Part shown: positions 23,401-26,400 of the stretch, piece by piece | Layout: every line of letters begins with the position of its first letter | Position numbering within the stretch: position 1 is the first letter of the stretch | Source: Bugula neritina | Taxonomy: Eukaryota > Animalia > Bryozoa | NCBI GenBank assembly: GCA_964035545.1 | Contig: OZ037767.1 | Location: 445,680-509,679 of the forward strand | Reading direction: 5' to 3' | Length of the DNA stretch: 64,000 nucleotides | Program-made: the position numbers and the translations under genes | The notes under the pieces: generated by a model | What the model was told of the DNA's origin: nothing | Seen by the model: the letters and a program-made list of their open reading frames with translations, nothing else | The model's database searches: none

Positions 23401-26400
23401 GTGACTCTGTAATATACAGTAACTCTGTAATATATAGTAACTCTGTAATATATAGTAACTCTGTAATATATAGTAACTCTGTAATATACAGTAACTCTGT
23501 AATATACAGTAACTCTGTAATATACAGTAATATAGTAATATATAGTAACTCTGTAATATATAGTAACTCTGTAATATATAGTAACTATGTAATATACAGT
23601 AACTCTGTAATATACAGTAATATAGTAATATATAGTAACTCTGTAATATATAGTAACTCTGTAATATACAGTAACTATGTAATATACTGTAATATAGTAA
23701 TATATAGTAACTCTGTAATATATAGTAACTCTGTAATATACAGTAACTCTGTAATATACAGTAACTCTGTAATATACAGTAACTCTGTAATATATAGTAA
23801 CTCTGTAATATATAGTAACTATGTAATATACAGTAACTCTGTAATATACAGTAACTCTGTAATATATAGTAACTCTGTAATATATAGTAACTCTGTAATA
23901 TATGGTAACTTTGTAATATACAGTAACTCTGTAATATACAGTAACTCTGTAATATATAGTAACTCTGTAATATACAGTAACTCTGTAATATACAGTAACT
24001 ATGTAATATATAGTAACTCTGTAATATACAGTAATATAGTAATATATAGTAACTCTGTAATATATAGTAACTCTGTAATATACAGTAACTCTGTAATATA
24101 CAGTAACTCTGTAATATATAGTAACTCTGTAATATATAGTAACTCTGTAATATATAGTAACTCTGTAATATATAGTAACTCTGTAATATACAGTAACTCT
24201 GTAATATACAGTAATATAGTAATACGCTGACTCTACAAGAAGCTGCTCTTTCTATCTCAGGCTGACGTCAGCGCTGCCGTAGCACTTCTACTCTCTCTTA
24301 AAGCTGAATACAAGTCAGCAGTTGGTAAGGAGTGGAAACCAGGGTCAGCCCCTCCCACCACTGCCAAGGCTCCTCCCACCACTGCCAAGGCTCCTCCCAC
24401 CACTGCCAAAGCTCCTCCCACCACTGCCAAAGCTTCTCCCACCACTCAAGCTAGTAGCCAATCAGGTGCAGAGTTGAATGCCAAAGTTGTCCAACAGGGT
24501 GAAGTTGTGAGGAAACTGAAAGCTGAAAAGGCAGACAAGGTAAGTGAACTCCAATCCGAGGTTTCATCTAGTATTCCACTTGGATTAGGTTGTAGTTAGC
24601 TGTGGTCCATCAGCACCACGTCTGCTTAATGTCAAGGACATCTGCTCTCTACTAGACTCTGTTACACACGTGTTCATCTCTATAGTAGCTGCCTTGTCAT
24701 ACAGATGAAAGTTTAGACATTCTATAGTAAGAAATTCTTTAGATGTCCGTCAGGTTTAGTAATACACAAGTTTGCTAACATGCATCAATAAATTTATATC
24801 TTTTGGTGTTTTGAGCAAACATTTCAACGCCAAGTAGGACTTTCTGATGTAATGTTGAGATATCGGAGGTTCTGAGACTAGAATATGTGCAGAGTTTACC
24901 ATATATCTTCCTGCTACTCTGTTGGGCATTATGCCAGCCATTTAGTAGGAGGTGTGAGGTTTGCTGATGAAATACTGTGTACAAGGAGTTGTGTTCTAAA
25001 TATAGCACTAGGGTTCCTTGTATCCCTCTCGGCCAATAGGATATCAGTATTAACTCTACAGTCAACTGAGTGGCTGATACGCATCACTGAACAAAGCGCT
25101 CATTAATTAAAAAGCACGTTTGTGTCGAGTTGGCCAGTTTATTATTACTCTTACTATAGAACAGTTAAACTGTGCTACTACTACTAGCGTGTCGGTGTCA
25201 TTATCAGCGTCTGCTGTGTGGTTGAAGGTAATTATTTCTATTCGTATTCGTAGTTACACATTGTCGGTGTGTGAAGTAAACAACATGCCGGTAGCAGTTA
25301 CTTTCATTCGTTTCAGACGATTACTGTTAACCTGACTATTGAATAATAATAAACTTATTATTAATATTTTCTATTGTAATGAATTGTTTATACAAAGATT
25401 ATTGTCTGCCCTTTCATACTCTATTCTTTCCTAATGAATGTAAACTTCACTCCACCTTAAGGTGTAGAATGGAGAGATTAGCTGAATCACTTCCCACTAC
25501 ACATAACATACCCATAGTGATAGTGCTGCTCAGTGACTTACACCAACAGTATGTGACTTACACTAACAGTATGTTACTTACACTAAAAGTATGTTACTTA
25601 CACTAAAAGTATGTTACTTACACTAAAAGTATGTTACTTACACCAACAGTATGTTACTTACACTTACAGTATGTTGTGGTAGAGTGGTGTTAGCCTTGAG
25701 TAGTACTTGACTGGTGTTGGTACTTGAGTAGCACTTGCTGTTTGTCTACAGGAAGTCATCAAGAAGGAAGTGGGCGTGTTGCTGAGTCTGAAGGCGGAGT
25801 TTAAGCAAGTAACTGGCAGCGATTGGAAGCCGGGGATGTCTACTGTAGAGGTAACGCCACAGAACGGCAGTAGCGGCGGTGCTGTCTTGGGAGAGCGGAT
25901 CACTGCTCAGGGTAACAAAGTCAGGGAACTGAAAACTGGTAAAGCTGACAAGGTGAGACAACTCTACTCTCAGTTTGAACGTGTTTCTCATATATGACTC
26001 AGCTGAGGTGTGGCAACTCCAACATGTAAGGCAATTGTTGAGTCTCAGTCACTTTTTCTGTTAGGCTGAAATAGACGCTGCGGTGAAGGTGTTGCTGGAA
26101 CTGAAGGCTGAATACAAGACAGTGACAGGGGCGGACTGGGCCCCACCCGCCGGTCAGAATGCTAGTGCCAGGGCTAAGAAGGAGAAACAACCCAAACAAG
26201 AGAAGAAGGTAGGCGGAGTCTGTTTCACTTGGACACGAGAGAACTGTTGGGAGTTGTGCTTCCATGGTGTTTTGTACACTCTCTGCTCCTTGTAGCCTGG
26301 GAAACCTGCACAACCAGCAGCCAGCTCCGGGGACAGGGAGGTGAAGAAGACCACCCGACTTGGACTGGAGGCCTCTAAGTCTACAGATCTGTCAGACTGG

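Follow-up and report, generated by a model that had tools for sequence, protein, structure and literature searches.

An intron of EPRS, the Glu/Pro-tRNA synthetase gene of the bryozoan Bugula neritina, contains on the plus strand an element of about 590 nt (588 nt, positions 24749-25336) whose helices and motifs follow one another in the order of RNase P RNA (RPR). Positions are those of the window, i.e. the whole stretch of DNA analysed, 64,000 nt long (G000:C3:445680-509679, in a 216-Mb animal genome). Our preferred reading, which we hold tentatively, is that of a decayed or repurposed RPR copy, a catalytically dead relic in a slowly and alternatively spliced intron. Descent from an RPR seems to us probable; this is the authors' judgement and not a computed posterior, and it was reached from an architecture test, the likeness of one P1 strand to that of the true RPR of the genome, and the location, on the sense strand and entirely inside an intron of a gene with a housekeeping role in translation. 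The first-pass annotation had proposed either a tRNA-processing RNA or a derived paralog. The latter is the likeliest origin, while the former is unsupported: a canonical RPR occurs elsewhere in the genome, invariant residues are lost, divergence is at the level of the flank and the element is spliced through.

Host gene and intron

EPRS exons were located by tblastn with full-length homologues on the plus strand, from about 15.7 to 30 kb of the window. The host intron (24540-25751, 1212 nt, GT..AG) was delimited by RNA contigs of three runs, in which 24539 is joined to 25752. It is flanked upstream by an exon encoding a WHEP half, a linker and a further WHEP half (24261-24539) and downstream by a second exon (25752-25952), both of them established by tblastn and RNA joints. 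The host had been called intron 16; it is an EPRS intron, numbered 15 here, and 16 is possible given one further 5' exon. The element had been correctly described as lying in sense within the EPRS transcript, with neither promoter nor terminator.

Architecture of the element

All helices named in the first-pass annotation were formable in the nested order of RNase P, with corrections to P2 and P3; all features given below are on the plus strand. P1 (5' strand 24749-24762, 3' strand 25321-25336, from fold and pairing) had been given 15 bp and has 14 pairs plus a possible 15th, with a 2-nt bulge and a pairing probability of 0.9-0.97. The P2-like helix (5' strand 24763-24768, with 25268-25273) comprises 6 bp, not 7, and lies outside the MFE fold. 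The supposed long P3 turned out to be two separate hairpins (24770-24820 and 24821-24861, together filling the P3 position at 24770-24861) rather than one P3 with an internal loop. As proposed, the CR-I-like stretch forming the P4 5' strand (24865-24881) pairs with TTCAGAC (25312-25318): eight P4 pairs are formable between 24869-24877 and 25311-25318, with U24871 bulged. P8 (24883-24904) is present but weak, with 5 bp, and is followed by a long P9 (24907-24952) of 10 bp, the two occupying 24883-24952.

The announced GTGAG/CTCAT pairing, i.e. P10, was recovered together with a 4-bp P11 (24954-24963 with 25092-25103, spanning 24954-25103). Within it lie degenerate CR-II (24964-24972) and CR-III (25087-25091) stretches and an enlarged P12 region (24979-25079), P12 itself having 10 bp. 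Where extra helices had been placed (25104-25272), an insert of about 145 nt does occupy the P15 position (25104-25249) and bears an internal 5' splice site; its structure, however, is not above that of shuffled sequences (z 0.2). Further 3' are a CR-IV-like stretch that is off consensus (25250-25262), a P19-like hairpin (25273-25304) and the CR-V-like P4 3' strand (25305-25320). P19 has 6-7 bp and lies 7 nt from the P4 3' strand, as in the true RPR of the genome; its 3' strand can alternatively pair with the internal splice site (25223-25233). P5/P7 is barely formable.

The element is indeed enlarged, with 588 nt versus 276-280 nt for the true RPR, and no oligo-T follows P1, as had been observed. 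Normally invariant residues were rightly described as altered in CR-I and CR-V, and the same holds for CR-IV. Relative to the true RPR, an A-to-G change falls at the position of E. coli A66 in the CR-I-like stretch, and further changes at those of C348, A352 and U360 in the CR-V-like stretch; the A66-U360 pair is replaced by a G.G opposition that opens P4. The E. coli numbering, and the importance of these four positions, are assumed here. In an alternative alignment, the 3' end of the element retains TACT after a 3-nt insertion, and under either reading of this end the conserved junction is broken.

The fold of the element has a z of -2.6, and its predicted ensemble includes P1, the first P3-like hairpin, P9 and P12. 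P2, P10/11 and P19 are outside the ensemble, as is P2 in the case of the true RPR. A thermodynamic gap was discarded as a counter-argument to the fold, since the gap per 100 nt is alike in the true RPR.

Working RNase P and MRP RNA genes

The check for a Pol III RPR elsewhere in the genome, suggested in the first-pass annotation, returned one canonical copy on C4 (G000:C4:9697079-9697354, minus strand), which scores 88.4 bits with RF00009 and has all five conserved regions. The intronic element is therefore not the cell's RNase P RNA, and its candidacy as the sole or main RPR was dropped. One canonical MRP RNA gene was also found (G000:C4:6540992-6541227, plus strand; 92 bits with RF00030). 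Both the RPR and the MRP gene are preceded by a shared PSE-like element at -64/-65, in which 17 of 22 letters agree, and by a TATA near -30, and both are followed by a T-run; the intronic element is devoid of all three. It was also rejected as an MRP RNA, having no covariance-model (CM) score and no mCR-I, mCR-V or GARAR loop, with a canonical MRP gene elsewhere. The P8 loop of the MRP RNA itself reads GCGAG, not GARAR.

Pop1, Rpp21 and Rpp29 have one locus each in the genome, and no duplicated RNase P protein subunits were found; Rpp20 gave no Pfam match, a result that is uninformative in a spliced genome. From a reading of the flanking frames, the C4 RPR seems to occupy an intron of a VPS9-like gene on the opposite strand, and a comparable antisense intronic position is described for the centipede RPR in PMC4287351.

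Homology or chance resemblance

The foremost rival explanation is chance: a piece of intron of non-repetitive sequence and moderate structure, containing a cryptic 5' splice site, would resemble RNase P RNA without being related to it. We consider this unlikely, though to be taken seriously. It is favoured by the Rfam search, in which the element gave no RNaseP_nuc or MRP match even at E<=10; the proposed cmsearch check with RNaseP_nuc thus yielded no significant score (the RF00009 family threshold is 28 bits, and large inserts would penalise any covariance model). The CR-I region matches the Rfam consensus at 15 of 17 positions. The CR-I-like 13-mer by itself is at chance level genome-wide (63 matches versus 62 in the control); what is unusual is the combination alone. 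About 108 CR-I-like sites of equal quality are expected per genome, which again speaks for chance. Twelve other matches to the 13-mer belong to one LINE-like repeat, a young family whose copies (L021, L023, L028, L030, L031, L034, L039, L042, L058, L067, L069 and L074) are 97-99% identical over 1 kb, have a LINE-like frame and carry the 13-mer by chance.

Sixty genomic CR-I-like sites were fetched, and three descriptor tests were derived from the RF00009 consensus, with the true RPR as positive control; the descriptors were picked after the element had been seen. With the loose score, the element came first among the 56 genomic CR-I-like sites scored (122.8, the true RPR having 125.3 and the next site 110.9). 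An early motif-chain score and the length-penalised model did not separate it from chance; in the penalised model it obtained about 0 bits, against 47 bits for the true RPR, as chance would predict. In the component-wise test given CR-I (p about 2e-4), by contrast, none of 8,779 simulated nulls reached the architecture score of the element, a result that argues against chance; the combined architecture corresponds to an E of about 0.002 per window and 0.02-7 per genome, the upper value of 7 being compatible with chance. The signal of this test is carried by P1 (p=0.003), P9 (p=0.006) and P12 (p=0.005). Taken alone, P2, P19, CR-II and CR-III (p about 0.3 each, the latter two being partial matches to the T-loop motifs that flank P12), CR-IV (p=0.8) and CR-V (p=0.26) are non-significant, and on the same side stand the misfit of P3 and P5/P7 and a conservation no higher than that of the flanks.

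Three further observations speak against chance: (i) GTGAG finds its best partner in CTCAT, as predicted; (ii) the P19 spacing is exact; (iii) the 3' strand of P1 is like that of the true RPR, 9 of 12 letters being the same after a 3-nt offset (p=0.0025, post hoc). The site is also of the type described for intronic RPRs in PMC4287351, i.e. wholly intronic and in sense in a housekeeping translation gene. Over their whole lengths, the element and the true RPR gave no significant alignment, 33 of 300 shuffles being equally good.

Other origins were discarded. A dispersed family of intronic P-folds disagrees with the single DNA copy, a one-sequence CM giving only a chance match (E 5.2). A group I intron remnant, whose R motif the CR-I-like stretch presumably resembles, has neither a matching S strand nor an Rfam match, and a telomerase RNA is contradicted by a sequence with no TTAGGG template.

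RNA evidence and the internal splice site

The RNA data were assembled contigs, from which ends, strand and level are unreadable. In run X1 (random-primed, total-RNA type), contigs cover nearly the whole host intron, and in four neighbouring introns the bins hold no contigs or are fully accounted for by those of exons; coverage confined to the host intron argues against DNA contamination. The expectation of expression above neighbouring introns was therefore borne out as to coverage, but it is the whole intron that is covered rather than the element.

One X1 contig extends from the upstream exon through 24540-25227 and is joined unbroken to 25752 via AAG/GTAATT (25225-25233), an internal 5' splice site with an intron start at 25228 and a skip of 524 nt. 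A second X1 contig (about 25214-25724) shares only about 14 nt with the first, whereas a graph branch should leave 30 nt of overlap, assuming a word length of 31. In our reading, these contigs represent both products of internal-site splicing, and RNAs that span 25227/25228 uncut are few; the caveat is that assembly may prune a thin connection between them. This layout argues against an abundant discrete element RNA. No intact 590-nt RNA was present among the contigs, X3 and X6 had no contig on the element, and the internal splice that was observed severs the P-like fold. In transcripts that retain the 5' portion of the intron, a premature in-frame TAG is met at 24597-24599, 630 nt before the next junction. 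Taken together, the host intron appears to be slowly and alternatively spliced. Recursive splicing at AG/GT (25226-25229) was set aside as weak though possible, an AAG without a pyrimidine tract being unlike the other acceptors of the gene.

Divergence in a second strain

Run X1 and loci L010-L013 represent a divergent strain (equal exon difference counts). Its divergence amounts to 2.8% in exons, 6.7% in the element (24749-25225), 6.7% in the 5' flank and 10.8% in three short EPRS introns. Conservation of the element above the neighbouring intron was thus not observed, its divergence being that of the flank. Two observations nevertheless go against plain decay: divergence in the intron is under that of the short introns (6.7% versus 10.8%, p=0.05), and five of the seven stem changes with a visible partner keep the pair via wobble while two break it (one strain, up to 25050; 40% expected, p about 0.1). 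Among the 22 changes listed up to 25050, 10 fall at paired positions (11.7 expected) and none belongs to a two-sided compensatory change. One of the strain's substitutions is G24869A, which C25318T would compensate. The divergent strain apparently has a 7-nt deletion (25254-25260) in the CR-IV-like stretch, as read from a loose contig end. Overall, this divergence is unlike the pattern of an essential ribozyme, weak structural constraint being possible.

The insert can pair with its two flanks (over 23 nt and 15 nt), but this pairing was not kept as a conserved feature, the 5' arm having three deletions and one substitution in X1, with a fourth deletion adjacent. A search for orthologues in proteins, metagenomes, clusters and contigs retrieved the divergent strain of the same species alone, with contigs ending before the intron, and WHEP-region introns of animal loci L007-L009 gave no RNase P-like trace.

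Origin and present state of the element

Under the preferred reading, an old RPR gene copy would have landed in the EPRS intron, where the element is found in sense and without Pol III signals, and would since have been read solely within the EPRS pre-mRNA. Its helices would have been kept while the sequence drifted from that of the parent, a retention that probably reflects structural selection for a time. The extra hairpins and the 145-nt insert, both visible in the sequence, would be later gains, accompanied by the loss of invariant catalytic-core residues; this loss suggests that the element is now a catalytically dead relic, presumably under weak or no selection. Maturation of tRNA 5' ends would be performed by the Pol III gene on C4. 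Any present effect would be exerted in cis, splicing being slow and part of the transcripts using the 25228 site, which cuts the element; the stop-containing isoform, whose joint was seen in one run, is probably degraded.

Rather improbable in our view, but next in rank after chance, is an exapted, non-catalytic P fold that still works. It would bind Pop1/Rpp20/Rpp25 or the tRNA elbow co-transcriptionally and tune splice choice; EPRS output would then be regulated by unproductive splicing, a T-box-like logic in an animal synthetase gene that we judge equally improbable. The retention of helices when sequence likeness to the parent is mostly lost agrees with such a fold, as do the selective X1 coverage of the host intron and the mild whole-intron constraint with its lean to pair-keeping changes. 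The sole structural hint is that one strand can pair either within P19 or with the internal splice site; against it, the splice site is still partly paired with another strand when the P-like fold is constrained. In Drosophila, slow splicing favours RPP loading on the intronic RPR (PMC6797745). Here, however, the tRNA-binding T-loop motifs CR-II and CR-III are degenerate, the canonical P3 internal loop for Rpp20/25 is missing, two-sided covariation is absent from the changes up to 25050 in the one strain, and the alternative joint occurs in one run only.

A still bolder proposal, to which we give little credence, adds a third member to the RNase P/MRP family: non-catalytic, of independent origin in a bryozoan intron and still functional. 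Its RNase P fold, while part of the nascent EPRS transcript, would bind tRNA or RNase P proteins and thereby set the share of the unproductive isoform, as a eukaryotic counterpart of the T-box.

Finally, a second, catalytically active RNase P RNA, which would be released from the intron by trimming, as happens in insects and crustaceans, is very improbable: P4 with its eight formable pairs and bulged U, the single Pop1, Rpp21 and Rpp29 genes, the very large RPRs known (Candida glabrata, 1149 nt; PMC3001073) and the intron-born RPRs described in PMC4287351 would allow it, but invariant CR-I, CR-IV and CR-V residues are altered, a canonical RPR exists in the genome with no duplicated protein subunits found, divergence is at flank level with an apparent CR-IV deletion, and X1 contigs run unbroken through the internal joint, molecules continuous across 25227/25228 seeming scarce.

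Comparison with known RNase P RNAs

With RF00009 and the C4 RPR, the element has in common the order P1, P2, CR-I/P4, P8, P9, P10/11, P12, P19 and CR-V, the TTCAGAC motif and the 7-nt spacing from P19 to P4. It differs from them by its length (588 versus 276-280 nt), two hairpins in place of P3, a weak P5/P7, degenerate CR-II to CR-V, the lack of a CM score and of a Pol III promoter or terminator, and the presence of an internal splice site. As regards membership of RF00009, P1, P2 and P19 are in place (formable) and the P4 pseudoknot with its bulged U is present; the CM score, the invariant CR-I/IV/V nucleotides and a single Rpp20/Rpp25-binding P3 with an internal loop are lacking.

The Pol II RPRs of insects and crustaceans, as described in PMC4287351 and PMC6797745, also lie in sense in introns of housekeeping genes without Pol III signals, and their slowly spliced setting is matched by what appears to be slow splicing of the host intron here. 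Those RPRs are functional, with intact conserved regions, and are presented there with no Pol III copy found alongside; the present genome has a Pol III copy beside a degenerate intronic one. In the survey of PMC4287351, molluscs and annelids have Pol III genes, with no bryozoan among the taxa given.

RPR-like duplicates of unproven function are known in human (RPPH1-2P/3P), mouse (Rprl1-3) and zebrafish (PMC3001073, PMC8509007), and they resemble the present case as a second RPR-derived locus beside a working gene. Sequence identity to the parent is 76% for the human copy and nearly complete for the mouse copies, which are shorter (PMC3001073, PMC8509007), whereas the element is enlarged and, overall, unalignable to the parent, having kept helices rather than sequence. 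RNase MRP RNA (RF00030) shows that a P-fold paralog can take on a new role, although the element has no MRP-type CR-I, no GARAR loop in P8 and no CM score. The literature searched contained no intronic paralog that is enlarged, preserves its structure and coexists with a Pol III gene.

If the element is RPR-derived, an RNase P RNA would have entered a Pol II intron a second time, independently and in a lineage other than the insects and crustaceans; the persisting Pol III gene would then correspond to the two-copy stage through which the arthropod switch presumably passed. It would also be a P-fold RNA missed by covariance models, which suggests that such paralogs are under-counted. Were it still functional, a ribozyme scaffold would have come to regulate the splicing of a tRNA synthetase transcript. 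Should it be a relic or a chance resemblance, what lasts is more modest: the true RPR and MRP genes have been located, and an internal splice site with an unproductive product has been found in EPRS.

Other features of the window

In the WHEP linker of the exon preceding the host intron, a 21-nt coding repeat (PPTTAKA, 24351-24446) was observed, of which runs X3 and X6 have two units (42 nt) fewer. Tandem repeats (an 18-mer x115 and a 20-mer x26) fill most of the longer EPRS introns (22134-24214 and 27849-28375); unlike these, two structured EPRS introns are non-repetitive. Another EPRS intron holds a second strongly structured, single-copy RNA-like stretch (20559-21092, plus strand, z -3.8) with a 16-bp long-range helix (20571-20586/21027-21042). 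This stretch had no Rfam match, no CR-I or CR-V and no RNA coverage in one read set, and it was unalignable to the RNase P-like element, a 9-mer alone being common to both. The last 12 kb of the window (51700-64000) consist of an AT-rich satellite. Additionally, a single open frame of 377 aa, GPCR-like (7181-8311, plus strand), lies within an intron of a gene on the minus strand, antisense to it.
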